Shown here piece after piece: positions 20,704-40,272 of a stretch of DNA of 64,000 nucleotides. Made by a program: the position numbers and the translations under genes. Positions within the stretch are counted from its first letter, which is position 1, and the number at the start of each line of letters is the position of its first letter. Source of the DNA: Pseudomonas aeruginosa PAO1 (GTDB lineage: Bacteria; Pseudomonadota; Gammaproteobacteria; Pseudomonadales; Pseudomonadaceae); NCBI RefSeq assembly GCF_000006765.1, contig NC_002516.2. The stretch is one strand, 5' to 3'. The notes under the pieces are model-generated. The model was not told the origin of the DNA, did no database searches, and saw only the letters and a list, made by a program, of their open reading frames with translations.

Positions 20704-20936
20704 TTGTGTACAAAAGTTGGAACGATTCTAGGCAGAGGGGGAGCGCAAGGTCAAGATGGGTTGTATACGCTGGAAAAAGTCGCTGAAATCAATTTTTCCA
20801 TAATAAAAACAATGAATTACAATTTTTGTTAGCTGGCTTATAAAACCAGCGTTTGAAAAAATGTATACAAAATTATGTTCATATTGTTCTGGAATGTTGC
20901 TTTCGTAGGGCCGGTCGGCTACTAGATTGGGTACAA
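20704..20936. promoter_or_regulatory. Divergent gcl / GlcG-like promoter region with four TTGTATACAA-like boxes
   Basis: Boxes at 20704, 20761, 20861 and 20927; minus-strand TTGACC-18-TAGAAT promoter at 20754-20725. Confidence 0.65.
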
Positions 20937-21005
20937 ATTTTCGAACGCGCCCGCATAGCGGGTGGTTTCCCGATTTCTAGCCTTAACAACTCGAGAGGAA
21001 CGACC

Positions 21006-21437
21006 ATGACCACCATCAGTCTGGAAACCGCGCTGGGCATTACCCGCCAGGCGCTGGCGGTGGGGCGCGAGCTGTCCACCGCGCCCCTGACCATCGCGGT
21101 GCTCGATGCTGGCGGCCACCTGGTGGCGCTGCAGCGCGAGGACGGCGCCAGCATGCTGCGACCGCAGATCGCCATCGGCAAGGCCTGGGGCGCCGTGGCC
21201 CTGGGCAAGTCGTCGCGGCTGCTGGCGGCGGATGCACAGCAGCGGCCTTCGTTCATTTCCGCGGTGAACACCCTGGCCCATGGCAATCTGGTTCCGGCGC
21301 CGGGCGGGGTGTTGATTCGCAACGACAAGGCAGAGGTGGTCGGCGCGGTCGGTATCAGCGGCGATACCTCGGATATCGACGAGCAATGCGCGATCCAGGG
21401 CGTGCTGGCGGTCGGGCTGGTGCCCGACGCCGGTTGA
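21006..21437 (+). CDS. GlcG/HbpS-family heme-binding protein
   Basis: Start MTTISLE after GAGGA RBS; IAVLDAGGHL...REDGA, IA.GKAWGA, GGVLI and GAVGISG motifs. Confidence 0.88.
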   Translation: MTTISLETALGITRQALAVGRELSTAPLTIAVLDAGGHLVALQREDGASMLRPQIAIGKAWGAVALGKSSRLLAADAQQRPSFISAVNTLAHGNLVPAPGGVLIRNDKAEVVGAVGISGDTSDIDEQCAIQGVLAVGLVPDAG

Positions 21438-21479
21438 GCTTGCGGCCCGCTCACCAGGACCGGGCCTTCGCTCCCTTCT

Positions 21480-21737
21480 TCAGGTGGCGTACGCCGCCAT
21501 CCACCAGGCTCTCCGTGCCATACCTGCAGCGGGGCTCGTTCGAGGCCAGGAATAGCGCGGCACTGGCGATCTCCAGCGGCTCCCCCAGGCGTCCCGGCCA
21601 ATCTTCTCCCTCAGCGCCTGGGCGGCCTCGAGATCGGTAGCGGCCTTGTCCAGCGCTGGCGTCCGGGTCGGCCCCGGGCTCAGGGCGTTGACCCGGATAC
21701 CGCGCTCGAGCAACTCCGCCGATAGCGTCCAGGCGAG
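21480..21737 (-). pseudogene. C-terminal remnant of a short-chain dehydrogenase (frameshifted, N-terminus deleted)
   Basis: TLSAELLERGIRVNALSPGPTRTP, then after a frameshift GRLGEPLEIASAALFLASNE..YGTESLVDGG. Confidence 0.8.
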
Positions 21738-21840
21738 GTGCATGCGGAGCTGCCGCCGCGGGTCGAATACCGCGTCACGCCGCTCGGTGCGAAGCCGGCG
21801 CTGGGGCGGGGGCGGCACGCGATTGAGCGTGCCGCGGCGG
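21735..21840 (+). pseudogene. C-terminal remnant of an HxlR-family winged-helix regulator
   Basis: EVHAELPPRVEYRVTPLG matches the HxlR wing signature (..PPRVEYSLT.LG); no N-terminus. Confidence 0.65.
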
Positions 21841-21841
21841 G

Positions 21842-22492
21842 TCAGAGCGGCAGCGGCCGAAGCCGGCCGGCGCTCTTGCCGGATTGCCCGTCGGGCGTGC
21901 AGCCTTTCAGGACCAGGCGGGTGATGGTTTCCACCGCAGCGTCGTAGTCGGCGTCGCTGAGCTGTTCCTTGCCGGTGACGATGGAAATCTGCCAATCGAA
22001 GTCGGCATAGGTCTGGGTCGCCGCCCAGATGGCGAAGAGCAGGTGATGTGGGTCCACCGGGGCGAGCTGGCCACGGTCGATCCAGGTCTGCAGGCAGGTG
22101 ACGTTGCGCTGGGCCTGGGCGTTCAGTTCGTCGAGGTATTCCTTCGGCAGGTGCGGCGCGCCGTGCATGATCTCGCTGGCGAAGACCTTGGAGGCATGCG
22201 GCAGCTCGCGGGAGATGCGGATCTTCGAGCGGATGTAGGCGGGCAGGGCGAGCAGCGGGTCGTCTTCCACGCGGAACGGCGCCGACGCTTGCAGCAGCGG
22301 CTCGACGATGCTTTCCAGCACGCAGCGATAGAGGTTTTCCTTGGACTGGAAGTAGTAGTAGACGTTGGGCTTGGGCAGGCCGGCGCGGGCGGCGATGTCG
22401 CTGGTCTTGGTCGCCGCGAAGCCCTTGTCGGCGAATTCCTCGCTGGCGGCGCGGAGGATCAGGCGCTTGTTGCGCTCGCGGATGCTGGTCAT
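21842..22492 (-). CDS. TetR-family regulator, RutR/YcdC-like
   Basis: Start MTSIRERNK; HTH IAARAGLPKPNVYYYFQSKENLY; YIRSKIRISRELPHASKVFASEIMHGAP and WAATQTYADF resemble RutR. Confidence 0.9.
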   Translation of the reverse strand: MTSIRERNKRLILRAASEEFADKGFAATKTSDIAARAGLPKPNVYYYFQSKENLYRCVLESIVEPLLQASAPFRVEDDPLLALPAYIRSKIRISRELPHASKVFASEIMHGAPHLPKEYLDELNAQAQRNVTCLQTWIDRGQLAPVDPHHLLFAIWAATQTYADFDWQISIVTGKEQLSDADYDAAVETITRLVLKGCTPDGQSGKSAGRLRPLPL

Positions 22493-22727
22493 CAGTCCTT
22501 GTTCTTCATTGCTGCAACGGCGGCAGGAAGCCGAGGATGGTAGCACCCGCCCGGAGCGCCCCTCAAGCAAGGTGCGAGCGAGGCGGAGGCCCGGGAAATC
22601 CTGACCCGCCGGTTCATTTGCCCTATACATTTCCCGGTATTTGGAGTATTCGTTAGGGGTATCGAGTCGCCCGCTCGCACTCACCCACCGAGCGCCGGGC
22701 GAGCCCCCCGGAACAGAACGAGTCACT

Positions 22728-23723
22728 ATGTCCGATTCCCGCCTGGTCGATCCCTTCGGCCGTCGCATCACCTACCTGCGCCTGTCGGTGACGGATCGCT
22801 GCGACTTCCGCTGCACCTACTGCATGAGCGAAGACATGCAGTTCCTTCCCCGCGACCAGGTCCTCAGCCTGGAAGAACTGTACGCGGTGGCCGACGCCTT
22901 CATCGGCCTCGGCGTGCGGCGCATTCGTATCACCGGCGGCGAGCCGCTGGTGCGCAAGGGCATCACCGGCCTGCTGGCACGCCTGGGGCAGCGTGCGGAA
23001 CTGGAAGACCTGGCGATCACCACCAACGGTTCGCAACTGCGCGAGCGCGCCGCCGAGCTGAAGGCCGCCGGCGTCCGCCGCCTCAACGTCAGCCTCGACT
23101 CGCTGCAGCGCGAACGCTTCGCCGCCTTCACCCGTAGCGATCGCCTGGAGCAGGTGCTGGACGGCATCCAGGCGGCGCGCGAAGCCGGTTTCGAGCGGAT
23201 CAAGCTGAACTGCGTGGTACAGAAGGGCCGCAACGACGACGAGATCCTCGACCTGGTCGAGTACGCCCTGGCCAACCAGTTGGACATCAGTTTCATCGAG
23301 GAAATGCCGCTGGGCAGCATCACCAGCCACCGTCGCGAACTGACTCTCTGCACCAGCGACGAAGTCCGCGCGATCATCGAGCGCCGCTGGCCGCTGACCC
23401 CGAGCCTGGCGCGCAGCGGCGGGCCGTCGCGGTATTACCAGATCGGCGACGAGCCCAGCCGGATCGGCTTCATCTCACCTCACAGCAATAATTTCTGCGG
23501 CGACTGCAACCGCGTGCGCGTCACCGCCGAGGGCAAGCTGGTGCTCTGCCTCGGCCACGAGGGGGCGCTCGACCTGCGCGAACTGCTGCGCAGTCATCCC
23601 GGCGACCGCGAGCGCCTGAGCGCGGCACTGGTGGCGGCGCTGAACCTGAAGCCGGAGCGGCATCACTTCGACGCCCAGGAGCAGGTCCAGGTGCTGCGTT
23701 TCATGAGCATGACCGGCGGCTGA
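22728..23723 (+). CDS. moaA2: GTP 3',8-cyclase (molybdenum cofactor biosynthesis, radical SAM)
   Basis: YLRLSVTDRCDFRCTYCM, ITGGEPL, FCGDCNRVR and C-terminal MSMTGG. Confidence 0.95.
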   Translation: MSDSRLVDPFGRRITYLRLSVTDRCDFRCTYCMSEDMQFLPRDQVLSLEELYAVADAFIGLGVRRIRITGGEPLVRKGITGLLARLGQRAELEDLAITTNGSQLRERAAELKAAGVRRLNVSLDSLQRERFAAFTRSDRLEQVLDGIQAAREAGFERIKLNCVVQKGRNDDEILDLVEYALANQLDISFIEEMPLGSITSHRRELTLCTSDEVRAIIERRWPLTPSLARSGGPSRYYQIGDEPSRIGFISPHSNNFCGDCNRVRVTAEGKLVLCLGHEGALDLRELLRSHPGDRERLSAALVAALNLKPERHHFDAQEQVQVLRFMSMTGG

Positions 23724-23737
23724 CGGTATCCTCCTGG

Positions 23738-23765
23738 GGCGATGGCACCAACGGCGCCATCCGCC
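23738..23765. repeat. Degenerate REP-like palindrome
   Basis: GGCGATGGCACCAACGGCGCCATCCGCC, related to the copy at 38510. Confidence 0.4.
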
Positions 23766-23907
23766 GCTTCCTCTCCCATGCCACCCGGGCGACCGTGTTC
23801 CGGCACGCACCGCTCGCTGCCCCGTCCCGGGAAAAGCGACGCGGCGCAACGCCGAAACGCGGCGAAGACGTCATGCTGCCTGCCGCGCCAGCAAAGGAAA
23901 GCCTCCC

Positions 23908-24237
23908 ATGCACCGGGTCCTGTTCATCTGCAGCCGCAACCGCCTGCGTAGTCCCAGCGCCGAACGGCTGTTCGCCGACTGGCCGGGCGTCGAGACCGAT
24001 TCCGCCGGGCTGGCGGCGGACGCCGAGACGCCCCTGGAGCGGGAGCAACTGGAGTGGGCGACGCTGGTCGTCGTCATGGAGCGCCGCCACCGGCAGGCGC
24101 TGCTGCGCCGGCACGCCGCGGCGATGAAAGGCAAGCGCCTGGTCTGCCTGGATATCCCGGACGACTACGCCTACATGCAGGCGGAATTGCTGCATCTGCT
24201 GGAGCGCAAGGCGGGGCCTTTCCTTCGGCGGGACTGA
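23908..24237 (+). CDS. Low-molecular-weight phosphotyrosine phosphatase-like protein
   Basis: VLFICSRNRLRSPSAE (CX5R P-loop), DSAG, LDIPDDY. Confidence 0.85.
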   Translation: MHRVLFICSRNRLRSPSAERLFADWPGVETDSAGLAADAETPLEREQLEWATLVVVMERRHRQALLRRHAAAMKGKRLVCLDIPDDYAYMQAELLHLLERKAGPFLRRD

Positions 24238-24267
24238 GTGGTGCGGACCGCGAGCGGAGAAAAAGAA

Positions 24268-24284
24268 GCCGGACGAAGTCCGGC
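24268..24284 (-). terminator. Intrinsic terminator after the NCS2 permease
   Basis: GCCGGAC-N3-GTCCGGC followed on the minus strand by TTCTTTTTCT. Confidence 0.6.
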
Positions 24285-24328: not shown

Positions 24329-25696
24329 TCAGGAGTGCTTGGGCGCCGGCGCGTGGCTGCCGCACAAGTGGCTGCGGTCGTTGCGGCTGAGGATGTTGAA
24401 CAGCAGGTTCAGCACCACCGCCCAGATCGCGGTCATGGCGATGCCGCTATGGGTGATCGGCTCCATCCAGACCGGCAGGCGGGCGAAGAAGTCCGGGCGC
24501 ACCACCGGCACCATGCCCATGCCGATGCTTACCGCCACCAGCAACTGGTTGCGGCGGTCGGTGATGTTGGCCTCGTGGAGGATCTGGATGCCGCTGGCGG
24601 CGACCATGCCGAACATGGCGATGCCGGCGCCGCCGAGTACCGCCGGCGGGATCGAGGCGACCAGGAAGGCGGCCTTGGGCAGCATGCTGAGGAGGATCAG
24701 GAAACCGGCGGCGGCCACCGTGACGTAGCGGCTGCGCACCCCGGTCATCTGCACCAGGCCGATGTTCTGGGCGAACGAGGAATGGGTGAAGGTGTTCAGG
24801 AAACCGGCGAAGAACGAGGCGCCGGCGTCGCAGAGCAGGCCGCGGCGCAGTTCGGTCGGGGTGATCTCGCGGCCGGTGATCTTGCCCAGGGCGAGGAACA
24901 TGCCGGTGGACTCGACGAAGATGATCACTACCACCAGGCACATCGACAGGATTGGCGCCAGGTCGAAGGTCGGCGCACCGAAGTGCAGCGGGGTGACGAT
25001 GTCGAACCAGGGGCGCTCGGCCAGACCGCCGAGGTCGACCATGCCCATGCCGCCGGCGATCGCGTAGCCCAGGCCCATGCCCATCAGCACCGAGATGTTG
25101 ACCCAGAAACCGCGCATGAAGCGGTTGATCAGGAGGATGGTGCAGAGCACCAGGCTGGAGAGGAACAGGAAGTGCAGGGAGCCGAAGTCTTCCGCGCCCT
25201 TGCCGCCGCCGGCCCAGTTGATCGCCACCGGGAACAGGCACATGCCGATCGAGGTGATCACCGTGCCGGTCACCAGCGGTGGGAAGAAACGCACGATGCG
25301 CGACATGAAGGGGGCGATGAGCATGCCGAAGAAACCGGCGGCGATGGTCGCGCCGAAGATCCCGGTGATGCCCACGCCGGGCATCCCGGCCATCGCCACC
25401 ATGCTGCCGACGGCGGCGAAGCTGGCGCCCATCATCACCGGCATGCGGATGCCCATCGGGCCGATGCCCAGCGACTGGACCAGGGTGGCGATGCCGGCGA
25501 CCAGCAGGTCGGCGTTGATCAGGAAGGCGATTTCCTCGCGCGAGAGGCCGGCCGCCTGGCCGACGATCAGAGGCACGGCGACGGCGCCACCGTACATCAG
25601 CAGCACATGCTGGAAGCCCACCAGCAGCAGCTGCGTCAGCGGCAGGCGCTGGTCTACGGGCGAGTCGGGGATGCGGCGATCAGTTACCACGGACAT
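24329..25696 (-). CDS. NCS2/NAT-family xanthine/urate permease
   Basis: GFQHVLLMYGG, GASFA, ESTG and NAT signature FAQNIGLVQMTGV.SR. Confidence 0.92.
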   Translation of the reverse strand: MSVVTDRRIPDSPVDQRLPLTQLLLVGFQHVLLMYGGAVAVPLIVGQAAGLSREEIAFLINADLLVAGIATLVQSLGIGPMGIRMPVMMGASFAAVGSMVAMAGMPGVGITGIFGATIAAGFFGMLIAPFMSRIVRFFPPLVTGTVITSIGMCLFPVAINWAGGGKGAEDFGSLHFLFLSSLVLCTILLINRFMRGFWVNISVLMGMGLGYAIAGGMGMVDLGGLAERPWFDIVTPLHFGAPTFDLAPILSMCLVVVIIFVESTGMFLALGKITGREITPTELRRGLLCDAGASFFAGFLNTFTHSSFAQNIGLVQMTGVRSRYVTVAAAGFLILLSMLPKAAFLVASIPPAVLGGAGIAMFGMVAASGIQILHEANITDRRNQLLVAVSIGMGMVPVVRPDFFARLPVWMEPITHSGIAMTAIWAVVLNLLFNILSRNDRSHLCGSHAPAPKHS

Positions 25697-25819: not shown

Positions 25820-25897
25820 TTTATATCCCCGTTGTGTGCTCGATTCAATCGATTTTTTGTATACAAAGTAATTTTTTGTAGTTGACCAATCGGTCTA
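25820..25897 (-). promoter_or_regulatory. Sigma70 promoter of the NCS2 permease with two operator boxes
   Basis: TTGAAT-17-TATAAA (25848-25820); TTGTATACAA at 25857-25866; TTGACCAATCGGTCTA at 25882-25897. Confidence 0.7.
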
Positions 25898-26378
25898 CTA
25901 CAGGCTTTCCAGAGCTGCTTCCACTGTATCCATAGAACTGGCGCCGGCTACCCCCGGGACGCCCGGCGGTGTACGACATTGGTCGGATAGCCGACGTGCT
26001 CTAGCCGCTGGGAGTTTTCAGCGACCCCTACCTCAGTGGGCACAAGCCCGGTGCAGCAAGGCCTTGAACCCTGTCGCCCGGGATCAGCCATGGGTCTTTG
26101 CGGAACGCCTGCTTGCATTGGCGACTACAAGCAGCGACGTGCGCGAGAGCAACCGGCTATCTGAGCGCCAGTAGATCCTGGCGGCAATGGAGACGCTCAA
26201 CGAGCAAAGAGAATGCCGCCAGCGCTTGCTGGAGTGCACAACGGCAGACTGGCCAAGGTGCCAAGGCTCTGGGCAGGTCAGGCTGGACAAGAAGCCGGCG
26301 GAGTTTTCCTGAGCGTTCTACAGGAGAGGCACGAAGGAGGTCGCCGAAGTCTTTCGGCATATCGAACGTCCCCCTTTT

Positions 26379-26639
26379 TCAGTTTTCGGCAGCGCCCAAC
26401 GGGCCACTGGCAATCAGGCTGGCACCACAAGCTGTTTTCATCCCATGTAGCGCGACCGGGACCCCATTCACATCCAGCAGGGCGCTACCTTCGGTAATGG
26501 GGAAGGTTCCCTTGCACAAGGGACAAACCACTTGGTGGCCTACACCGGCCATCGGCTTGCCGTTGAGGTCGGTCTGGCCGAACGCCTCAATCACCGTGCC
26601 TCCATGGCTGGTGGTGTCGCCAAGGCGAATGATGTCCAT
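26379..26639 (-). CDS. PAAR-domain T6SS spike-tip protein
   Basis: IRLGDTTSHGG.V, CPLCKG, VALHG...ACGA.LIAS. Confidence 0.92.
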   Translation of the reverse strand: MDIIRLGDTTSHGGTVIEAFGQTDLNGKPMAGVGHQVVCPLCKGTFPITEGSALLDVNGVPVALHGMKTACGASLIASGPLGAAEN

Positions 26640-26651
26640 CGCGGGTTGCTC

Positions 26652-27794
26652 CTATAGGTCGTCCAGCCAGCTGTCTTTTGGCTTCAGGCTGGAGAGGAAT
26701 TCCTCATAGACATAGTGATCACCGAGCGTTTGGCCGCCAGGCGTAGCGGGTTTCGGAGCAGGGGAAGGACCGGCATTTCCGCCACGTGGCGATGAAGACG
26801 TCGGGCGCACGCGAATCGAATCGACAATGGTGTCCCACAGTTCCAATGCTTCTTTATCCGATTTGAAGGCAGGGGGCGGTGGTTTACCGTTTTCATTGCT
26901 GCGTTCCAGTACCGCCAGTCCCGCAGTAAGATTGGGCTCGGTTAGCGATTCCTCCTTGCCTTGAACCTCCCACATGAAGGTATAGCCGCGCTGCCCCTTA
27001 TCGCTTCCCGCAACCAGATACTCCTCTCCGGGAAGGCTCCCGACAGGATGCTTTCCTTTTCTTAATGTTTCCATACCTGCAAACGTGGAGAGCATGTTTT
27101 GCACGAAGCCGTCGACTCGCTCAAGAAGGCTGTTTAGCTCAGCTCCCGTGGAGGAGCGGAATTCAAAGCGCGCGCCGGGGTGCTCAGGGAAAGTGACTCC
27201 CACTCCAAACCTCTCCACTTGAAAACTATCCCCTGCAATATAAGCGTGGTCGATGCAAAAGCCCGGCTCGCTGGGGATTTCTTTTGGCGCGCGAGAACGT
27301 AGATTTCGAGCTAAAGCCCTAGATATCTCCACAGCATGTTGCTCTCTGTCTACCGAAACTTTCCCTTTCCAACGATAGACATGCCACGTAGGCTTAGATG
27401 TAACATAGGTATCCAATAAATAGGTTTTAGAGGCAACCTCTGAAGACCAAGACAATAAACCTACTGATTCATTGCCAAAGTCAATTTTACGAAGAAACAT
27501 GTTACCTTTGGATTTATGTCTCTGAGTCCTCCACTCTTGTTCAAGACGATCAACCCTGGCTGCCAGTTCGGTAGGTTTATCATCTAAGTACTCAATTCTG
27601 TCTCCCCATAGGTAGTATCCGGCATTGATTACCGCGTCAGGTGGCAGATCAATCAGAAAGCGACCAAAGCAATGAGTAATCCATCCGGTCTTGTCCATGG
27701 AAGAGCTCCGAGAAGAAGAAAACGAAGTGCAACTGGTCATGCTGGTCAAGACCACCACTCCAAGTACAGCAAGCAACCGACGGGGATGCATCAT
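26652..27794 (-). CDS. tli4: T6SS lipase immunity lipoprotein (Tli4/TplEi type)
   Basis: Lipoprotein signal ending ...TSMTSC; CFGRFLIDLP and PGFCID motifs; ATGA overlap with the effector gene. Confidence 0.85.
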   Translation of the reverse strand: MMHPRRLLAVLGVVVLTSMTSCTSFSSSRSSSMDKTGWITHCFGRFLIDLPPDAVINAGYYLWGDRIEYLDDKPTELAARVDRLEQEWRTQRHKSKGNMFLRKIDFGNESVGLLSWSSEVASKTYLLDTYVTSKPTWHVYRWKGKVSVDREQHAVEISRALARNLRSRAPKEIPSEPGFCIDHAYIAGDSFQVERFGVGVTFPEHPGARFEFRSSTGAELNSLLERVDGFVQNMLSTFAGMETLRKGKHPVGSLPGEEYLVAGSDKGQRGYTFMWEVQGKEESLTEPNLTAGLAVLERSNENGKPPPPAFKSDKEALELWDTIVDSIRVRPTSSSPRGGNAGPSPAPKPATPGGQTLGDHYVYEEFLSSLKPKDSWLDDL

Positions 27795-29500
27795 GTCCCT
27801 CCTTTGTCATTAGGATGCCAATCCGCCAACTGGGTGATTTTGATCACCCCATATAGCGCTGCCCATTGAGCACGAGCATCGTTGTAACTCTCCTGGTGCT
27901 CATAGCCCCGTTTGGTATTGGCCTGTCCCTTGCCCTTGCTGCCATGCCGAAAGCTGGCCTTGACGCCCGCCAGGGCAGGCGCCTGGCCGGAGTCGGTCGG
28001 TACCGTTTCGTCACCTCCGCTACCGGAAGCGTCCAGAGGATTTCCCGTCTCCAGCGGACCCTGCACTATGGTGGGCAAGCCCCGGCGGAACCAACTGTTG
28101 TAAGTGCCGTTCTCATCGTCGTTGAGTGTGGCACCGGGGGTCTCCAGAGGGGTAGGGTCACCCTTCCAGATCAGGTCGCGCCAACTATGGCGGCTATCGT
28201 CAGCTCCGTAATGGGCATAGGTCTCTGAGTGATATCCTGCTGCTGATAATTCACCATGAAAATTAGCAATGCTATCTATCAAGTCTTCAAAGTTATCACG
28301 GGGGCCAACTCTTAAACCTTCTTTTTTGTCTGACATGTCCAGATATTGTGAATTTTGCTCAGGCACCAATCCATACCACGTAGTGTTCTTGTATATCTCT
28401 TCATAAGGGTCCTGATTCTGCGGATAAGCCCGAGGCTTTCCATCGATATCCTTGAGCACCTGCCCCTGCGCGTCGCATAGAAACAGCCAGGGACGCCCTT
28501 CCCGGTATTCCGCGCTAGGGGCCAATTCCAGCGCGCCGGCCGAATTGGCGACAATGGCTGTCACTTCACCGGCATTTCGCCCCAGCACGACCTGTGCGAT
28601 ACCTTCATAGCCACAGCGCATATGATGGTAGATGGTCGAGGAACCTGTCGCAGGTTGTACGCCATGCACCACCCCCAATACGCGCTCATAGCCGTGCAAC
28701 TGCGTCAGGGCGCGAGCCACCAGCCCTCCCATCGAATGGGTGACCAGAATGACCTTCATACGTCTCATCTGCTCGGGATCGAGACCGCACTCCTTTTGGT
28801 AGAAAGGCAACACGGTATTCTCGATATAGTCGCGTACATCCAGCGCCGACTGCCGGTTGGACTGTAGCCAGTTATAGCCGGCGCACCAGACATCGAACTG
28901 GTATCGGCTGGCCCTGAGCAATTCCTCTTCATCGATCGGCCCAACCTTTCCCTGCTCCTCACCCTGATCTCCAGGAGGAGAGAGGGCTTCGTCATTCCAC
29001 CATGCCTGGAGTTCCCGCCGGCTGACGATGTTATCCAGTCGCCTCTCCATTAATCCCATGACCGGGTTATACGCACTGCGCATGACCTTGCCCCAGCCGC
29101 GCAGGCGGGCAGCTTCTTCGGACAAACCAGATTGACCGACATCGATCGTACCCTGGTCATCGACTTCTACTTGCTCAGCCTTCAGGAGCTCCTGACGGGC
29201 CTTTGGACCCCTCCAGGCCCAAGTCCACAACGCACCGATGGAGGCAAACAGGTCATCCATGGGCCACAGACCATTCGGCGGCCTCCAGACCTCGCTTTTA
29301 TCTGCCTTGTTGCGCAGGTTGGTTCCCATGATCCCCGGAATGAAGATCACCGGCAGGGGAGCGGTCTGCCGAATCAGTGCCACCTTTTCGCTCTGGTTGT
29401 CGGTACGGGTCAACTGCGCCTTGTAGACAGGCCGTCCCAGACTGTCGCGAGAGCGAGGGATGATCACATCCTGATTCGGCTCGAGCGGTTCGCTGCTCAT
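27791..29500 (-). CDS. tle4: T6SS phospholipase effector of the Tle4 (PGAP1-like alpha/beta hydrolase) family
   Basis: PVIFIPGIMGT, GYNWLQS, nucleophile elbow LVTHSMGGL, terminal YEHQ; coupled to vgrG. Confidence 0.88.
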   Translation of the reverse strand: MSSEPLEPNQDVIIPRSRDSLGRPVYKAQLTRTDNQSEKVALIRQTAPLPVIFIPGIMGTNLRNKADKSEVWRPPNGLWPMDDLFASIGALWTWAWRGPKARQELLKAEQVEVDDQGTIDVGQSGLSEEAARLRGWGKVMRSAYNPVMGLMERRLDNIVSRRELQAWWNDEALSPPGDQGEEQGKVGPIDEEELLRASRYQFDVWCAGYNWLQSNRQSALDVRDYIENTVLPFYQKECGLDPEQMRRMKVILVTHSMGGLVARALTQLHGYERVLGVVHGVQPATGSSTIYHHMRCGYEGIAQVVLGRNAGEVTAIVANSAGALELAPSAEYREGRPWLFLCDAQGQVLKDIDGKPRAYPQNQDPYEEIYKNTTWYGLVPEQNSQYLDMSDKKEGLRVGPRDNFEDLIDSIANFHGELSAAGYHSETYAHYGADDSRHSWRDLIWKGDPTPLETPGATLNDDENGTYNSWFRRGLPTIVQGPLETGNPLDASGSGGDETVPTDSGQAPALAGVKASFRHGSKGKGQANTKRGYEHQESYNDARAQWAALYGVIKITQLADWHPNDKGGT

Positions 29501-32025: not shown

Positions 32026-32206
32026 GGATCGTTCCTTGTTCCTGGCGGGCGGTTCCTCCCCCATCCGTTGGAGAAGCGAGCCCCACGTTACTCTTGCTCA
32101 GCCGCTGCCGAAAGTCTTGGCTCGGTGTCTATTTCGCGAAGTAGCGGACATTTTCGGCTCGACGGAGAACCGGCCGCACAGGTGTACGACCGGTGTGCCT
32201 GTCAAC

Positions 32207-32725
32207 TCACCCTGCCACCGGCGAGCGCCAGTCGTCGGAGCCGGAGGTGCCGGAGACTTCGTGGGTCCAGGTGATCTTGCGGTAGGTGAAGTGCACGTCT
32301 TCCAGGTGGGTGAAGTGGGCGTTGCCCGGGTCCTGGCAGTTGTGCATGTAGTCCTTGATGTCGACGATGATCGCGTCTTCCAGGACGGTGGTGTAGTAGT
32401 GCTCCTGGGTGCCGGCGGCGGAGGTGCGGTACCACTGGATCTCGACCTTGGTCAGGCGCTCGCCGGAGGTCAGGGCGGCCAGCAGCAGCGGCGAGGCCTT
32501 GTCGAAGACCTTGGTGATGACCACCGGCTTGTGCACGCGCTGGCCGGTCGGCTGGCCGGACTGCGGGTCGCGCGGGATGATCACTTCGTGGTTGAAGCCC
32601 TGGACCATCACCTGGTCCTCGTGGCCTTCCTGGTAGGTGTTGCCGACCGAATCCTCGGTGAAGGCGCCGGCGGTGATCAGGCCCTGCTTGGTGCCGGTGA
32701 TGGACATATAGGCGGGGGTTGCCAT
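32207..32725 (-). CDS. hcpA: Hcp tube protein (H2-T6SS type)
   Basis: MATPAYMSITGTKQG, SGQPTGQRVHKP, FTYRKITW. Confidence 0.95.
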   Translation of the reverse strand: MATPAYMSITGTKQGLITAGAFTEDSVGNTYQEGHEDQVMVQGFNHEVIIPRDPQSGQPTGQRVHKPVVITKVFDKASPLLLAALTSGERLTKVEIQWYRTSAAGTQEHYYTTVLEDAIIVDIKDYMHNCQDPGNAHFTHLEDVHFTYRKITWTHEVSGTSGSDDWRSPVAG

Positions 32726-32783
32726 GGATACGTTCCTTGTCGTTGAAAGTGCCCAGGCGATATGCCGGGGGCATCGGTGCTAG

Positions 32784-32798
32784 ACAAGAACCGTGCCA
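32784..32798 (-). promoter_or_regulatory. Sigma54-type promoter upstream of hcp
   Basis: Minus strand TGGCACGGTTCTTGT: perfect -24 element, -12 element TTGT instead of TTGC. Confidence 0.6.
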
Positions 32799-32884
32799 CT
32801 AGTCTTGAAACTCTTTTCCATCAAGGCGTTATTGGGGGAAGCCAAAAATTCGCTGGCGATTCTCATGGGAAGAACACTGAAAAT

Positions 32885-32995
32885 TGCGCAACTTTTTGCG
32901 CACCGCTTGCAAAAAGTTGCGCACTCTCTCGGAGCCCTTTGGGTATTTGTTCCCTAGCGTTCTATCCACAACGTTATCAACCAAAAAGTTGCACA
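32885..32995. promoter_or_regulatory. Candidate enhancer (UAS) repeats for a sigma54 activator
   Basis: Perfect 15-bp inverted repeat TGCGCAACTTTTTGC (32885-32899) / GCAAAAAGTTGCGCA (32909-32923); third copy CAAAAAGTTGCACA (32982-32995). Confidence 0.55.
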
Positions 32996-33112
32996 GTTCT
33001 TCATTGGCAAGGTAGGCGAAGATAGCGCCGCACGGTTTCGTTCCATCGGCCCAGGGTGAAGGAAAGTGAGTTATCGGAGAGGTTGGGGGCTGAAAGATAT
33101 GGCCAGTTATGG

Positions 33113-33142
33113 CCAAAAGCCCTCTATGGAGAGGGCTTTTGG
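33113..33142. terminator. Intrinsic terminator downstream of puuD
   Basis: CCAAAAGCCCTCT-ATGG-AGAGGGCTTTTGG. Confidence 0.8.
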
Positions 33143-33210
33143 GGTAGGGCCAGCAGGGTTGTTCTGCTGCGGGGAACCGGAGGTGCGGTTCTTAGCCTTT
33201 CGGCCAAGGC

Positions 33211-34488
33211 TCAGTTGATCTGTGCGCCCTTGGCGATCCAGCTGCCGATCAGGTTGCGTTCTTCCTGGGTCATCTGCGTGATGTTGCCCAGCGGCATGAT
33301 CTGCGAGGCCACGGCCTGGGCCTGGATCTTCGGTGCCAGTTGCTGGATCTGCTGCGGGGTGTCGAGCATGATCCCGCCTGGCGCGGTGCTGAACAGCTGG
33401 CTGGTCGGTTTCGCCGAGTGGCAGACGGTGCAGCGCTCCTGAATCACGTGATGGACCTTGTCGAAGTCGGCTCCGCTCGCGGCCCCGGCATTGGAGGCCT
33501 GGGTCGCGGCGGGCGCGGCTGGTGCGTCGCCGCCGGTCGCCGGTTGTGCCGGTGCCGCCGCCGGGGTGCTGGCCAGCGGTGCGGAAGCCTGCTGGTAGTT
33601 CGGCGTGGTGACGAAGGCCAGGGCGATCATGCCCAGCGCGCCGGCGGGCAGTGCCCAGGCGAAGCGGTTGCTTTCGTGGCGGGTGTTGAAGTAGTGGCGT
33701 ACCAGTACCGCGAGCACCGCGATGGCGGCCAGGATCAGCCAGTTGTACTGGCTGCCGTAGGTGCTCGGGAAGTGGTTGCTGATCATGATGAACAGCACCG
33801 GCAGGGTGAAGTAGTTGTTGTGCCGGGAGCGCAGCAGGCCCTTGGCCGGCAGCACCGGATCGGGCTCGCGGTTTTCTTCGATGGCTTTCACCAGCGCGCG
33901 CTGGGCCGGCATGATCACCCTGAACACGTTGCCGACCATGATGGTGCCGATGATCGCGCCGACGTGCAGGTAGGCGCCGCGGCCGCTGAACACCTGGGTC
34001 AGGCCGTAGGCGGCGGCGACCAGCAGGACGAACAGGACCAGGCCGAGCAGGGCAGGGGTCTTGCCCAGCGCCGAATCGCAGAGGATGGTGTAGACGAACC
34101 AGCCGCAGACCAGCGAACCGATACCGATGGCGATGGCCGCCGCCGGCGCCAGGTCGCTGCCGGGGGCGATCAGGTAGAGGGTCGGGTTCAGGTAGAACAC
34201 GATGGTCAGCAACACCACCCCGGACATCCAGGTGGAGTAGGCCTCCCATTTGAACCAGTGCAGGTTCTCCGGCATTTTCGGCGGAGCCAGCTTGTACTTC
34301 TCCAGGTGGTAGATGCCGCCACCGTGGATTGCCCAGAGGTCTCCGGACAGGCCTTCACGCGGGTTGCTGCGGTTGAGGTTGTTCTCCAGCCAGACGAAAT
34401 AGAACGAAGCGCCGATCCACGCGATCCCGACGATCATGTGAATCCAGCGCACCAGCAGGTTCAGCCATTCGATGAGATGTGCTTCCAC
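33211..34488 (-). CDS. puuD: Membrane urate hydroxylase with C-terminal cytochrome c
   Basis: WLNLLVRWIHMIVGIAWIGASFYF, IHGGG.YH, WFKWEAY, SRHNNYFTLP and heme motif CTVCH; sits in the purine cluster. Confidence 0.85.
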   Translation of the reverse strand: MEAHLIEWLNLLVRWIHMIVGIAWIGASFYFVWLENNLNRSNPREGLSGDLWAIHGGGIYHLEKYKLAPPKMPENLHWFKWEAYSTWMSGVVLLTIVFYLNPTLYLIAPGSDLAPAAAIAIGIGSLVCGWFVYTILCDSALGKTPALLGLVLFVLLVAAAYGLTQVFSGRGAYLHVGAIIGTIMVGNVFRVIMPAQRALVKAIEENREPDPVLPAKGLLRSRHNNYFTLPVLFIMISNHFPSTYGSQYNWLILAAIAVLAVLVRHYFNTRHESNRFAWALPAGALGMIALAFVTTPNYQQASAPLASTPAAAPAQPATGGDAPAAPAATQASNAGAASGADFDKVHHVIQERCTVCHSAKPTSQLFSTAPGGIMLDTPQQIQQLAPKIQAQAVASQIMPLGNITQMTQEERNLIGSWIAKGAQIN

Positions 34489-34536: not shown

Positions 34537-35046
34537 TTATTGGTTTGATTGGGGGTCGAGGAGGAGCTGTTCGTCCTCGGTGAAGAAATGCTCGTCGCAG
34601 TTGTTCCCGGAACCGCTGCGATCGACCACCAGGAAGTCATCCCGCTTTTCGATCGTCAGCACCGGATGGTGCCAGACGCCGCGGTGGTAATTGACGCCCT
34701 GCCTTCCGTTGGTCAGGAAGGCGCGGACGAGGCCCGGTACAGGTACATCGCCAAGTGGCGCGACCACGACCAGAAAGGGGTTGCCGAGCAGCGGGATGAA
34801 GGCCTGGCTGCCCAGCGGATGGCGTTCCAGCATGCGGATGCGCAACGGCATTTCCAGCTTCTCGGCGCTGAAGATGCTGATGATCGCGTTATCTTCCGGC
34901 TGCGCGGTCTCGACCGTGGCCAGCTTGTGATAACGGCGGGTGGAGCCGTTGTTGATCATGAAATAGTCGCTGCCGGCGGTTTCGATCACGTCACCGAACG
35001 GGGCGAAGGCTTCCTTGGTCAACGGCTCGATCTTGAGAGTGCGCAT
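34537..35046 (-). CDS. allA: Ureidoglycolate lyase
   Basis: LTKEAFAPFGDVI, MLERHPLGSQAFIP, GVNYHRGVWHHP. Confidence 0.92.
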   Translation of the reverse strand: MRTLKIEPLTKEAFAPFGDVIETAGSDYFMINNGSTRRYHKLATVETAQPEDNAIISIFSAEKLEMPLRIRMLERHPLGSQAFIPLLGNPFLVVVAPLGDVPVPGLVRAFLTNGRQGVNYHRGVWHHPVLTIEKRDDFLVVDRSGSGNNCDEHFFTEDEQLLLDPQSNQ

Positions 35047-35100: not shown

Positions 35101-36099
35101 TCACGGTAATTGTGGCCTGCCGAACAGGCGCAGGCGGCTGACGCCGCCGTCGGGAAAGATGTTCAGGCGTACATGGGTGATCGGGCCGAGGGCGTTGAGG
35201 TGCCGCTCGAACCGATGTTCCTGGTGCATTTCCAGCTTCTGCGCTGGCAGCAGCTCGCGCCAGAAGAGGCTCTGCGCCTCGATCCGGGCCTCGTTCCCGC
35301 CTTCCACGAAGGCGGCCTGGATGCTGCAGCTTTCCGGATAGTTGCCCTTGAAGTGCAAGGTATCGACGACCGCCGCCTCGATGCTGCCGGGATGGCCGAG
35401 GGCGACGATCACCCAGTCGTGGCCCGGCGTGCGGCGGCGGCCGGTTTCCCAGCCGTCGCCCATGTTGATGGCACGTCCGGGGTTGAGCAGGTTGCCCATG
35501 CGTCCGAAATGCTGGTCGGAGCAGGCCAGCGCCCGGCCGCCGTTGACCGCTGCGGCCAGGTCGAGCGCCGTTCCCGGCGGCTGGTTGCTCCAGTCGCGGT
35601 AGGGCACGCCATAGAGGCGCAGGCGGGCGATACCTCCGTCCGGGTAGATGTTCAGGCGCAGGTGGGTCCAGGGACGTTCGTCGTCTATCGGGTGGTAGTG
35701 ATGGCTATCGCCCTGCAGCCCCACCGCCGCCAGCACTTCGCTCCAGGACGTGCTGTCGTCCGGGTCGCCTTCGGCGCAGAAGCAGCCATCCAGGGAAGCC
35801 GCCGGCGGATGGTTGCCGGTGAAGAAGCGGGTGTCGATGTCGACGCCCTTCAGCACGCCCGGCACACCCAGGCGGATCACCGCCTGGTCATGGCCCTCGA
35901 AGCGCTTGCGGCGGGTTTCCCAGCCGTCCATCCACTTGCCGCTGTCGTCGAATACGCCTTCCTTCCACACCGGTTCGCCGGCCTGCAGCATGCGGCTGGC
36001 CGGGGCGAACCATTCGTCGCTGACGGCGACCACCTGGCTGCCCAGGCGTGCGTCGGCGAGGTCGAGGTAGTGGCGGAAGGGCGAGTGTTCGGCGTTCAT
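35101..36099 (-). CDS. alc: Allantoicase
   Basis: Start reset to MNAEHSPF; duplicated DGWET.RRR and RLNI.PDGG..RLR motifs. Confidence 0.93.
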
Positions 36100-36116: not shown

Positions 36117-36632
36117 TCAGAGCTGCTGCAGGCGGAACAGGGCGATCTTGTTGATCTCGGCCAGCGCGGTAGCGAACTCCTCGTCGGCGGAGTGCTGGAT
36201 GCGTTCCTCGAAGGCCGCCAGGATCTGATGGCGGTTGCTGCCCTTCACCGCCTTGATGAAGGGGAAGCCGAACCTGGCCTTGTAGGCGTCGTTGAGTTCG
36301 GTGAAGCGGGCGAACTCCTCGGCGCTGCATTCGTGAATCCCGGCGCCGGCCTGCTCGGAGGTGCTGGAGGCGGTCAGTTCGCCACGGATCGCCGCCTTGC
36401 CGGCGAGGTCCGGGTGGGCGTTGATCAGCGCCAGCTGGGCCTCGCGGCTTGCCGACAGGAGAATGTCGGCCATGCGCTGGTGCAGGCCCTCGATATCGTT
36501 GAGGCTGTCGTCGATACCCAGGTCATAGGCCTTCTCGGCGACCCAGGGGGAGTGTTCGTAGATGTCGGCGAAGGCTTCGATGAAGGCCTCGCGGGACAGC
36601 GAGGCGGGGGTCAGGGTCTGGAAACGGCTCAT
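36117..36632 (-). CDS. uraD: OHCU decarboxylase
   Basis: [34 protein letters not shown]. Confidence 0.92.
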
Positions 36633-37555
36633 GCCTCGGTCTCCTGGAAAGGATGCTCACGGTGCCAATGGCGGGCGATGTCTTCGCGGCGGGCGAACCA
36701 GACCTTGTCGTGGCTCTGCGCGTACTGGATGAAGCGCTCCAGGGCGGCCATCCGCGCCGGGCGACCGATCAACCGGCAATGCAGGCCGATGGAGAGCATC
36801 TTCGGCGCCGTTGCGCCTTCTTCGTAGAGCACGTCGAAGGCGTCCTTCAGGTACTGGAAGAACTGCTCGCCATTGTTGAAGCCCTGCACCTGGGTGAAGC
36901 GCATGTCGTTGGTGTCCAGGGTATAGGGAATCACCAGGTGCGGTTTCTCCGCGGTGCTGGCCGGGTCCCAGTAGGGCAGGTCGTCGTCGTAGGTGTCGGA
37001 GTCATAGAGGAAGCCGCCTTCCTCCATCACCAGGCGCCGGGTGTTCGGGCCGGTGCGTCCGGTGTACCAGCCCACCGGGCGCTGGCCGGTGAGTTCGGTG
37101 AGGATGCGGATGGCTTCGAGCATGTGCTCGCGCTCCTGGGCCTCGTCCATGTACTGGTAGTCGATCCAGCGGTAGCCGTGGCTGCAGATTTCGTGGCCGT
37201 CGGCGACCATCGCCCTGATCACCTCAGGGTTGCGCTGCGCCGCCATGGCCACGGCGAACACGGTGAGCGGCACGTTGCGTCGCTTGAACAGCTTGAGCAG
37301 GCGCCAGACCCCGGCGCGGCTGCCGTATTCGTAGAGCGATTCCATGCTCATGTGGCGCACGCCCTGCAAGGGCTGGGCAGCCACCATCTCGGAAAGGAAC
37401 GCCTCGGACTCCTTGTCGCCATGCAGGACGCAGCGCTCGCCACCTTCTTCGTAATTGAGCACGAAGGACAGGGCGATGCGGGCATCGCCGGGCCAGTGAG
37501 GGTGGGGAGGGTTGTTGCCGTATCCGATCAGGTCGCGTGGGTAGTCAGCGCTCAC
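36629..37555 (-). CDS. puuE: PuuE-type allantoinase (polysaccharide deacetylase fold)
   Basis: GTG start MSADYPRDLIGY; NYEEGGE, ES.YEYGSRAG, HGYRWI, GWYTGR, GLHCRLIGRP. Confidence 0.92.
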   Translation of the reverse strand: MSADYPRDLIGYGNNPPHPHWPGDARIALSFVLNYEEGGERCVLHGDKESEAFLSEMVAAQPLQGVRHMSMESLYEYGSRAGVWRLLKLFKRRNVPLTVFAVAMAAQRNPEVIRAMVADGHEICSHGYRWIDYQYMDEAQEREHMLEAIRILTELTGQRPVGWYTGRTGPNTRRLVMEEGGFLYDSDTYDDDLPYWDPASTAEKPHLVIPYTLDTNDMRFTQVQGFNNGEQFFQYLKDAFDVLYEEGATAPKMLSIGLHCRLIGRPARMAALERFIQYAQSHDKVWFARREDIARHWHREHPFQETEA

Positions 37556-37620
37556 AGCAGTGTTCCTTATTGTGGATGGGGCGGCGGGCCGGACGGGCCG
37601 GGGATGCCGTGATGGATTTA

Positions 37621-37812
37621 TTGTATACAAGTTTGCCTGCGGTCTGTAAATACAATCCTGCTTGCCGATCCCTGCCATTCATCCAGCAAAAAACCTGCCC
37701 GACTGGTCAGTTAGCGAAGAATGAGGCCCTGCGGGGTGGGGCTTGTGGAAGGAATGCCCGATTTCGGGGCGGCTGCCGCATTTTCGGTTGTGGCGGTGTT
37801 TTTTGTATACAA
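37621..37812. promoter_or_regulatory. Divergent puuE / uraH promoter region with operator boxes
   Basis: Perfect TTGTATACAA at 37621 and 37803; partial RutR-type box CTGCCCGACTGGTCAG at 37695-37710. Confidence 0.65.
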
Positions 37813-37954
37813 TTCATCGAAGGATAACTTATATTGCTTCGCAAGCGGCTCCCTGGCGGGCTGCAAGCGAGCGGCGCCGGGCAGGTCCCGGAGCGATCCC
37901 CATCGAACGAAGGCAAGAGGAGGAGTGGTGTCCGCCAGCGGGCGCCCGCAACCC

Positions 37955-38308
37955 ATGGGACGTTTGACCACGCATGTACTGGATTCCGCACATGGCTGCC
38001 CCGGCCATGGCATCAAGATCGAGCTGTACCGGGTGGAAGGCCAGCAACTGGAACTGATCGCCACCACCCTGACCAACCACGACGGCCGCTGCGACCAGCC
38101 GGTGCTGCAAGGCGAGGACTTCCGTCCCGGGGTCTATCAACTGGTGTTCAACGCCGGCGACTACTATCGCGCCCGCGGCGTGCAATTGCCGGAGCCGGCC
38201 TTCCTCGACCAGGTGGTGCTGCGTTTCGGCATCGCCTCCGCCGACGATCACTACCACGTGCCGCTGCTGATCTCGCCCTACAGCTATTCGACCTATCGCG
38301 GCAGCTAG
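37955..38308 (+). CDS. uraH: 5-hydroxyisourate hydrolase (transthyretin-like)
   Basis: MGRLTTHVLD, TN.DGR, HYHVPLL.SPYSYSTYRGS; alternative in-frame GTG start at 37928. Confidence 0.93.
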   Translation: MGRLTTHVLDSAHGCPGHGIKIELYRVEGQQLELIATTLTNHDGRCDQPVLQGEDFRPGVYQLVFNAGDYYRARGVQLPEPAFLDQVVLRFGIASADDHYHVPLLISPYSYSTYRGS

Positions 38309-38350
38309 GTGCGTGCCACGAAACACTGACTCTCCGAGTCCTTTTCCCTG

Positions 38351-38375
38351 GCCCGCCATCGAGCGGGCTTTTTTT
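38351..38375 (+). terminator. Intrinsic terminator after uraH
   Basis: GCCCGC-N6-GCGGGC followed by TTTTTTT. Confidence 0.8.
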
Positions 38376-38509
38376 CGTTCGCGGGGAGTGCGCCGAGGGT
38401 TGCCGGTTATCCGCCACTCGTGGGCAGGAAGGGAAATGCGGCGCAGGGTACGAATGGGCGGGGGATGAAGCTGCGCGTCGCGAGCCCTGCGGGGCAACGA
38501 CAGGTTCGA

Positions 38510-38537
38510 GGCGGATAGCCGCGTGCGGCCATCCGCC
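38510..38537. repeat. Pseudomonas REP-like palindrome
   Basis: GGCGGATAGCCGC-GT-GCGGCCATCCGCC; related half copy CGGTTATCCGCC at 38404-38415. Confidence 0.55.
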
Positions 38538-38548
38538 ATCCGGGCGGG

Positions 38549-39898
38549 TCAGAGGAAGATGAACTTGGCGACGAAGATCACGAACAACGCATAGAGGCTG
38601 GCCGAGACTTCGCGGTGCTTGCCGGTGAGGACCTTCATCGCGACGTAGGTGATGAAGCCCAAGGCGATACCGTCGGCCACCGAGAAGGTCAGCGGCATCA
38701 TGATCACCGTGACGATCGCCGGGATGGTCTCGGTGTGCTCGTCCCAGTCGATGTGCGCCATCCCGCCCATCATCAGCATGGCCACGTAGATCAGCGCGCC
38801 GGCGGTGGCGAAGGCGGGGATCATCCCGGCCAGCGGGGCGAAGAACATCGCGGCGACGAACAGCACGCCGACCACCACCGCGGTGAGCCCGGTACGTCCG
38901 CCGGCGGCCACGCCCGCGGCGCTCTCCACGTAACTGGTCACCGGCGGGACACCGAGCATGCCGCCGAACACGCTGGAGGCGCTGTCGGCCTTCATCGCCT
39001 TCGACAGGTTCTCGATACGTCCGTCCTCCTTCACCAGGTGCGCGCGCTGGGCGACGCCCATGAGAGTGCCGGCGGTATCGAACATGTGCACGAAGAGGAA
39101 GGCCAGGATCACGCTGATCATGGTGACGTTGAACGCGCCGGCGATGTCCATCGCCAGGAAGGTCGGCGCCAGGCTCGGCGGCGCCGAGAACACCCCGCCG
39201 TACTGCACCAGGCCGAGGGCCCAGCCGACCAGGGTGACGCTGAGGATGCTGATGAGGATGCCGCCGAACACCCGGCGGTACTCGAGCACGGCGATCATCA
39301 GGAAGCACAGTGCCGCCAGCAGCGGGCCGGGCGAGGTGAGGTGGCCGAGCTTGATCAGGGTCGCCGGGCTGGCCACCACGATGCCGGCGGTCTTCAGGCC
39401 GATCAGGCCGAGGAACAGGCCGACTCCCGCACCCATGGCGAACCTGAGGCTGCGGGGGATGCTGTTGAGCAGCCATTCGCGGACCCGGGAGAAGGTCAGC
39501 AGCATGAACATCACCCCGGAGATGAACACCGCGCCTAGGGCGATCTGCCAGCTGTAGCCCATGGTGCCGACCACGGTGTAGGTGAAGAAGGCGTTCAGTC
39601 CCATTCCCGGCGCCAGGCCCACCGGCCAGTTGGCGTACAGGCCCATCAGGAAGCAGCCGAGGGCGGCCGCCAGGCACGTGGCGACGAACGCCGCGCCGTG
39701 GTCGATGCCGGCGTCGGCCATGATGTTGGGATTGACGAAGATGATGTAGGCCATGGTGATGAAGGTGGTCAGCCCGGCCGCCAGCTCGGTCCTGACCGTC
39801 GTACCATGCTGGCGGAGCTTGAACAGGCGTTCGAGCAGGCCGGTGGCGGGCGGTGTCGCAGCGTAGATCCCTTGTTCTTCTTGTTTGGTGCTTTCCAC
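38549..39898 (-). CDS. NCS2 AzgA/PbuG-family guanine/hypoxanthine permease
   Basis: GLTTFITMAYII.VNP, APGMGLNAFF, FDT.GT, YVESAAGVAAGGRTG. Confidence 0.92.
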   Translation of the reverse strand: MESTKQEEQGIYAATPPATGLLERLFKLRQHGTTVRTELAAGLTTFITMAYIIFVNPNIMADAGIDHGAAFVATCLAAALGCFLMGLYANWPVGLAPGMGLNAFFTYTVVGTMGYSWQIALGAVFISGVMFMLLTFSRVREWLLNSIPRSLRFAMGAGVGLFLGLIGLKTAGIVVASPATLIKLGHLTSPGPLLAALCFLMIAVLEYRRVFGGILISILSVTLVGWALGLVQYGGVFSAPPSLAPTFLAMDIAGAFNVTMISVILAFLFVHMFDTAGTLMGVAQRAHLVKEDGRIENLSKAMKADSASSVFGGMLGVPPVTSYVESAAGVAAGGRTGLTAVVVGVLFVAAMFFAPLAGMIPAFATAGALIYVAMLMMGGMAHIDWDEHTETIPAIVTVIMMPLTFSVADGIALGFITYVAMKVLTGKHREVSASLYALFVIFVAKFIFL

Positions 39899-39995
39899 AG
39901 CAGGTACTCCTCATCGCTCTTGTTGTTAGGTCCTGCGGGCCGGTTGGTTACCAGGTCCCTGACGCGGCTCGAAGGTGATGTGAGGGCACGATTTT

Positions 39996-40054
39996 CTGAC
40001 CTCTGGGTCAAGAACTCGTGCGAGCGATTATGCCTTTGTATACAAAAAGGTCAA
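39996..40054 (-). promoter_or_regulatory. Sigma70 promoter of the AzgA-type permease overlapped by two operator types
   Basis: TTGACC-16-CATAAT (40054-40027) with TTGTATACAA (40036-40045) in the spacer; CTGACCTCTGGGTCAA at 39996-40011. Confidence 0.7.
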
Positions 40055-40272
40055 AGAATGTTTGAGGGTGTTTCGCCACATTTTTATCAGCTTTCCGTCA
40101 CGCCCCCTTCCGGGCGGTGCCGCGCGCTCGGAACGAGGGGCGGAAAGGGGTGGTGCGTCGGATGCCGCTGCTTGTGTACACTATTTCGCTACCAGCCGCC
40201 GGCGTGCCTCACCCACGCCCGTGAGCGAGGATCAGCCCAGGCCACAAGCCGGACGCACAAGGTTCGAGACCG

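Follow-up and report, generated by a model that had tools for sequence, protein, structure and literature searches.

A recurrent palindrome in the urate and glyoxylate gene cluster of Pseudomonas aeruginosa PAO1 as the probable operator of the GntR-type repressor UgmR

In a 64,000-nucleotide stretch of the Pseudomonas aeruginosa PAO1 chromosome (contig NC_002516.2; the whole stretch is the window hereafter), the short palindrome TTGTATACAA and close variants of it recur between positions 20704 and 40181, in front of genes for urate breakdown, glyoxylate assimilation and two permeases of the NCS2 family, which raises the question of what protein, if any, reads it. An original prediction, made from the raw sequence alone, took it to define a purine/glyoxylate regulon under the GntR-family gene that starts at 40273. 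We consider it very probable that the palindrome is the operator of the product of this gene, UgmR (PA1520), a repressor of the urate and glyoxylate transcription units that would act by occluding their promoters and be released by urate. The UgmR regulon, with this palindrome as its operator, was already published in 2021-2022 and is not a discovery; what this analysis adds is the conservation of the operators site by site. That a reader of the sequence alone recovered a documented regulon, its regulator and its autoregulation is useful as a calibration point.

Four exact copies of TTGTATACAA were found in the window, at 25857, 37621, 37803 and 40036, compared with no match at all in 100 dinucleotide-preserving shuffles, which we used to set the chance level. 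Nine of the ten positions match at 20704 and 20861, and eight of the ten at 20761, 20927 and 40172; the motif search returned all nine sites with the coordinates and match levels originally given. They are all intergenic, as had been claimed, in a window that is about 88% coding (66% GC), and are confined to 4 of its 31 intergenic gaps. When up to two mismatches were allowed, 11 matches were observed compared to 2.6 expected. The two matches beyond the nine, one at 29421 (8/10, inside a lipase-like gene of the type VI secretion system [T6SS]) and the other at 57663 (8/10, in or near coding sequence), fit this chance number and were rejected as sites. The region around 57663 (56833 to 57988, 1.16 kb) is without a confident gene call in a list based on GC content at third codon positions, and has overlapping long open reading frames (ORFs) on both strands.

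The GntR gene, located at 40273 to 41052 on the plus strand and coding for 259 amino acids (aa), is PA1520, since the gene-specific parts of four PAO1 primers published for PA1520 (PMC1173109, Table 1) match the window exactly at 40277, 40646, 40709 and 40926. The primer pairs are oriented as expected and delimit fragments of 389 and 237 bp, compared to 388 and 236 bp stated in that paper. PA1520 has been named UgmR (PMC12694930, Microbiology, 2025). Its product is a FadR-subfamily GntR repressor, with a GntR-type N-terminal winged helix-turn-helix (residues 27 to 85, Pfam GntR PF00392, 2.3e-17) and a C-terminal FCD domain (residues 96 to 217, PF07729, 1.7e-23). Its best NCBIfam matches were PhnR, NanR and LldR, all far below their cut-offs, and a PDB sequence search retrieved only GntR/FCD regulators (best match 7u5q, 2e-19) and no solved structure of UgmR itself. 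The gene has guaD-xdhCBA as its neighbors on one side and a permease gene, hiuH and puuE on the other, and its closest relative in a one-per-species genome collection is that of P. paraeruginosa, with 99% protein and about 94% DNA identity. The palindrome, TTGT-AT-ACAA, is perfect over its 10 bp and has the GT...AC core of the operators of FadR-subfamily GntR proteins.

The link between this protein and the palindrome comes from the high-throughput systematic evolution of ligands by exponential enrichment (HT-SELEX) atlas (eLife, 2021), in which purified PA1520 yielded a dimeric model with the seed TTGTATACAAT (PMC8041468, supplementary file 9), bearing out the proposal that the GntR protein at 40273 is the regulator. 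Only 18 genomic matches are listed there for PA1520, indicating a small regulon. We applied the published matrix to the window, and the 16 best matches (at least 12.8 bits) were all intergenic. They correspond to ten places, namely, eight of the nine listed sites, an offset minus-strand reading of the ninth (20927) and an additional, weak position at 25924. The published matrix thus reproduces the sites, and the repeated motif is the specificity of PA1520 in vitro.

To follow the sites across species, we compared 80 loci around ugmR orthologues, one per species, with identities of 76 to 99% and a total of 1.525 Mb. They hold 135 exact copies of TTGTATACAA, where chance would give 0.24, and the count rises to 250 when one mismatch is allowed (9.6 expected, 5 to 14 in shuffles); none of these 80 loci had a copy inside a gene annotated by tblastn. 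An exact copy precedes puuE in all 57 species loci that hold this gene (median of 74 bp upstream), and a copy precedes the permease gene next to ugmR, which codes for 449 aa, in 65 of 65 loci (55 exact, median of 143 bp upstream). At hiuH, 57 sites were found in the 59 loci holding the gene, 44 of them being the TTGTGTACAA variant. The same variant, with G at position 5, makes up 55 of the 60 sites found upstream of ugmR in the 80 loci, at about 93 to 110 bp from the gene, which supports the predicted autoregulation. In the PA1520 matrix, G ranks second among the bases at this position. The preservation of TTGTGTACAA at hiuH and ugmR, together with that of the perfect palindrome at puuE (57/57) and the permease (55/65), suggests that operator strength is tuned, hiuH and ugmR having operators of lower affinity. 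The set is conserved down to its single sites in Pseudomonas, Ectopseudomonas, Metapseudomonas and Stutzerimonas, so that the motif can be relied on when the UgmR regulon is annotated.

How would UgmR act at each of these promoters? The clearest geometry is that of the 449-aa permease gene, where the exact operator at 40036 to 40045 lies, as originally described, between the -35 and -10 elements of a minus-strand promoter (TTGACC at 40054 to 40049, a 16-nt spacer and CATAAT at 40032 to 40027), a layout kept in 14 other species. At hiuH, the exact copy at 37803 to 37812 covers the -35-like hexamer of the promoter (TATACA at 37806 to 37811, an 18-nt spacer and TATATT at 37830 to 37835). The exact operator before puuE, at 37621 to 37630, is located 66 bp upstream of the GTG start codon, and a conserved TTTACA 14 nt farther upstream suggests that it covers the likely -10 element. 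Upstream of ugmR itself there is a degenerate operator (TTGTGTACAC, 8/10, 13.6 bits) at 40172 to 40181, 92 bp from the gene, whose orthologous position is the one that carries TTGTGTACAA in the 55 species mentioned above. The exact copy at 25857 to 25866 stands 161 bp before the gene for the NCS2 xanthine permease and is kept in the P. aeruginosa/nitroreducens/citronellolis group. An extra intergenic match to the PA1520 matrix that the original prediction did not list (CTGTATCCATA, 14.65 bits) is found at 25924 to 25934, 58 bp from this exact site.

The region between gcl and the divergent GlcG-like gene holds four of the nine sites. The proximal operator (TTGTGTACAA, 9/10, 16.3 bits; 20704 to 20713) extends as far as 36 bp upstream of the gcl ATG and lies 12 to 21 bp downstream of the -10-like TAGAAT, that is, at about +5 to +15. 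The distal one, on the side of the GlcG-like gene (ATGTATACAA, 9/10; 20861 to 20870), has the best score of the window (19.75 bits). The other two are weaker. One of them, TTGTATACGC (8/10, 13.3 bits; 20761 to 20770), stands 7 bp before the -35-like TTGACC of gcl; L081, the closest locus, alone has a counterpart (at -93), and support for it as a UgmR site is moderate. The other, TTGGGTACAA (8/10; 20927 to 20936, 70 bp before the GlcG-like gene), is a possible weak site that scores 10.2 bits as listed and 12.8 bits in the offset minus-strand reading, the weakest of the nine, and something similar is found only in L081. Among 80 metagenomic gcl loci, all 27 with a divergent GlcG-like gene have the proximal operator at -35 to -37 of the ATG and the distal one at -164 to -193, while 45 of the 46 loci without this arrangement have neither. 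An alignment of eleven gcl upstream regions (A1) contains as its only invariant blocks the two operators, the -35 TTGACC, the -10 and the ribosome-binding site. DNA looping between the paired operators was considered and rejected, as their centers are 128 to 157 bp apart across species, with no helical phasing; the two are more likely to be independent.

Put together, a UgmR dimer would bind TTGTATACAA(T) in front of five or six transcription units, ugmR included, at operators that overlap their promoters or adjoin them. The units under its control would be gcl (with hyi-glxR-glxK-pykF), the GlcG-like gene, the NCS2 xanthine permease, puuE-uraD-alc-allA-puuD, hiuH, the 449-aa permease and ugmR. 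UgmR would block RNA polymerase from within the spacer at the 449-aa permease, over the -35 at hiuH and over the likely -10 at puuE. At gcl it would do so from just downstream of the -10, and in the window the weaker site at 20761 abuts the -35. These placements fit either occlusion of the promoter or a block to promoter clearance. Uric acid would relieve the repression, and the route from urate through glyoxylate to glycerate would be switched on when uric acid is available.

Published work agrees with much of this scheme. As summarized in PMC12694930 from Xu et al. (2022, Environ Microbiol 24:3242), gcl and PA1513-PA1518 are both repressed by UgmR, which binds in front of them, and uric acid relieves the repression; PA1498-PA1502 are reported there as up-regulated in a ugmR mutant. 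A P. putida preprint using randomly barcoded transposon sequencing (RB-TnSeq) contained nothing useful on the regulator. The extent of the regulon in the window points in the same direction. The matrix scan of the window found no UgmR site, even weak, before xdhA, and neither did it find an operator belonging to the genes downstream of gcl, even a weak one, before hyi or glxK. The motif-defined regulon thus starts at urate, in agreement with urate as the inducer. The purine/glyoxylate regulon originally proposed is retained for the urate-glyoxylate-glycerate route and the two permeases, and does not take in xdhABC-guaD, which have no UgmR site. Among the effectors that had been suggested, urate is the published inducer, whereas allantoin is reported not to release UgmR (PMC12694930).

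Several points weigh against this interpretation. The promoters are consensus matches, and it is from their hexamers that we infer occlusion at each promoter; likewise, we infer UgmR binding at the permease and ugmR promoters. The sites at 20761, 20927 and 40172 carry two mismatches, a level at which 2.6 matches are expected by chance in the window, and strong positional conservation was found among them only at 40172. Of the 37 loci with the xanthine permease, only 11 have a site of the class found before it, and the operator at 25857 lies upstream of a -35-like hexamer, where simple occlusion would be unusual. The operator coordinates, the target list and any effector of UgmR beyond urate are taken second-hand, from the account of Xu et al. 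(2022) in PMC12694930. Finally, the induction of gcl by allantoin is reported to be independent of UgmR, so that other regulators act on the same promoters (PMC12694930).

Three other explanations have to be weighed against UgmR as the reader of the palindrome and the main switch of the cluster. A motif of this kind might reflect only chance or the composition of AT-rich promoter DNA, without any specific partner; the gcl/GlcG intergenic region has indeed only 41% GC, and two-mismatch sites in the window are near chance frequency. The shuffles, with not one exact copy, speak against it, and so do the 135 exact copies across the 80 species, at fixed positions relative to the start codons. No site was found in the other AT-rich gaps of the window (5305 to 5488, GC of 0.48; 52901 to 53064, GC of 0.44; 32726 to 33210, GC of 0.53) or in its low-GC island at 26 to 29.5 kb. 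On the conservation data, chance is scarcely credible as the source of these sites. Another GntR regulator might bind the palindrome, ugmR being linked to it only by position, given that GntR regulators have GT...AC cores in common. The neighboring PA1526-type regulator coded in the window, the HT-SELEX motif of PA1526 being TTGTNNNACAA (PMC8041468), and PA0120, for which a site is listed upstream of gcl (PMC12694930), were therefore considered. However, the PA1526 motif is an 11-mer with a 3-nt center, in contrast to the 2-nt center of the 10-mers found here, and the motif of PA0120 is ACCGGTNNNACCGGT, with 2407 genomic matches. The PA1520 matrix reproduces the sites exactly, and the HT-SELEX atlas shows that they are preferred by PA1520 and not by PA1526 or PA0120. 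Both proteins were rejected as binders because their motifs differ and, as the sites travel with ugmR across 80 species, we regard a different GntR reader as very unlikely.

The third explanation, that UgmR is one layer only and reports urate alone while the coupling of allantoin to glyoxylate depends mainly on another regulator, is a serious possibility, although we lean somewhat against it. Allantoin strongly induces the gcl promoter without relieving UgmR repression, and the authors concluded that UgmR is probably not involved in the allantoin response, naming PA1504 and others as candidate regulators for the allantoin response of gcl (PMC12694930); moreover, a second conserved palindrome is common to the two permease promoters. 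On the other hand, we found no RutR-like box in the gcl promoter. The gcl cluster is up in the ugmR mutant (PMC12694930) and both gcl operators are invariant in related loci, so that UgmR control of gcl is real. One repressor is thus not the sole link between allantoin breakdown and glyoxylate use, since the allantoin induction of gcl is reported to be UgmR independent. An additional layer would complement UgmR repression through the palindrome, the best explanation, rather than replace it.

The second palindrome, TTGACC-N4-GGTCAA, occurs with one mismatch at 25882 to 25897, 39996 to 40011 and 47338 to 47353, all of them intergenic. The first box is 16 bp from the UgmR operator at 25857, the second is the one that the multispecies view of the 449-aa permease promoter revealed as a conserved palindrome right after the -10, and the third lies 146 bp before xdhA. 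There is a weaker neighboring box at about 47314 to 47329 and a weak candidate at about 22600 to 22615. In the 80 species we counted 81 such boxes compared to 2.45 expected. With up to two mismatches, a box precedes xdhA by no more than 300 bp in 53 of 54 loci, and 56 of 65 have one before the 449-aa permease. The boxes at 25882, 39996 and 47338 have the half-sites and spacing of the 16-bp consensus of RutR, a TetR-family regulator of Escherichia coli, TTGACCAnnTGGTCAA (PMC2475637), and xdhABC and guaD were predicted by comparative genomics in 2016 as members of the RutR regulon in 22 genomes (PMC5343134, supplement).

The window codes for a TetR regulator resembling RutR, PA1504 (21842 to 22492, minus strand), which reaches 182.9 bits against the RutR equivalog model TIGR03613, below the cut-off of 368, and as judged from this score is a RutR-like paralogue and not RutR itself. 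It is described as uncharacterized (PMC12694930), and the HT-SELEX atlas lists no motif for it, although the protein was made there (PMC8041468). A block formed by this gene, the GlcG-like gene and the divergent gcl-hyi-glxR (20678 to 22492 in the window) is kept in 27 related loci, among L081 to L117, which indicates that the TetR gene travels with gcl and not with xdh. The second palindrome is likely the operator of PA1504. A plausible but tentative model would have two stacked repressors, PA1504 at xdhA and at both permease promoters, and UgmR from urate downward. If so, the permease promoters, with both operators, would combine urate with an upstream signal, either xanthine or a pyrimidine-like compound. 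To our knowledge, the assignment to PA1504 and the dual-operator permease promoters are new as proposals.

In comparison with the published UgmR of P. aeruginosa (PMC12694930), the gene, gene order, motif, targets (gcl and PA1513-PA1518), repressor role and urate response are the same. Nothing differs in kind, and what is added here are the coordinates of each site, the geometry of the promoters and the conservation seen in about 100 loci. UgmR shares with the FadR-subfamily GntR regulators that have an FCD domain (E. coli FadR, PdhR, LldR and GlcC) the winged helix-turn-helix, the all-helical FCD domain, the binding as a dimer to a short TnGT...ACnA palindrome, promoter-overlapping operators and frequent autoregulation. 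Its effector, however, is a purine (urate) instead of the acyl-CoA or hydroxy acid of these relatives. Urate is also the inducing ligand of the MarR-family repressors HucR and PecS. These have another fold and operator, and the genes that they control are for uricase or for efflux and stress instead of a catabolic route from urate to glycerate; HucR is described as a uric acid-responsive repressor (PMC12629798). The closest parallel in logic is E. coli AllR, a single repressor that ties the allantoin catabolic operons to gcl-hyi-glxR; it is cited in PMC12694930 as sensing allantoin and glyoxylate. AllR belongs to the IclR family instead of GntR/FadR and has another operator and other effectors, and is thus an analogue and not a homologue. 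The domains of UgmR are GntR and FCD, not those of an IclR-type regulator, and none of the cluster ORFs scanned codes for an IclR-like protein (IclR helix-turn-helix plus IclR effector domain).

Profile scans of the window ORFs with NCBIfam and Pfam confirmed the identity of all the genes that the original prediction had placed next to the sites (gcl, the GlcG-like gene, two NCS2 permeases, puuE, uraH and the GntR gene). On the minus strand, gcl, coding for glyoxylate carboligase (18902 to 20677, TIGR01504, 1173.7 bits, ATG at 20677), is followed by hyi (18024 to 18806), glxR (17059 to 17949), a glycerate kinase-like gene (15497 to 17062 as the longest ORF) and a 477-aa ORF that by position is pykF (14062 to 15495). 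The divergent GlcG/HbpS-like gene (21006 to 21437, PF03928, 6e-33) is on the plus strand, as is moaA (about 22740 to 23723). Both permeases, the xanthine permease (24329 to 25696, TIGR03173, 533 bits) and the 449-aa protein (38549 to 39898, PF00860, 2.9e-50), are Xan_ur_permease (NCS2) members coded on the minus strand. Also on this strand is the puuE operon, headed by puuE (36629 to 37555, GTG start) and continuing with uraD (36117 to 36632), alc (35101 to 36099), allA (34537 to 35046) and the puuD-type urate oxidase gene (33211 to 34488, Urate_ox_N PF06181, 9e-129). The hydroxyisourate hydrolase gene hiuH (uraH; 37955 to 38308, TIGR02962) is on the plus strand, with an in-frame GTG at 37928 as an alternative start, and guaD-xdhC-xdhB-xdhA (41106 to 47192) are on the minus strand.

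A 7.2-kb type VI secretion island (25989 to 33176) separates the xanthine permease promoter, which is under UgmR control, from the 3' end of puuD. Its genes, all on the minus strand between 26652 and 32725, are hcp (32207 to 32725), vgrG (29497 to 32064), a PGAP1-like alpha/beta-hydrolase (lipase-type) effector gene (27791 to 29500) and a Tli4-type immunity gene (26652 to 27794). Part of the island is of low GC (51 to 59%), and the ORFs are open over their full length. Terminator-like hairpins are found 3' of puuD, at about 33113 to 33140 and 33190 to 33209, and a sigma-54-like -24/-12 sequence (TGGCAC-N5-TTGT; 32780 to 32800, minus strand) about 60 bp upstream of hcp. The island thus probably has its own promoter, and read-through from the puuE operon into hcp-vgrG was rejected given the hairpins after puuD and the -24/-12-like sequence in the 485-bp gap. 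In P. paraeruginosa ATCC 9027 (L001), about 30 bp are found where the island stands.

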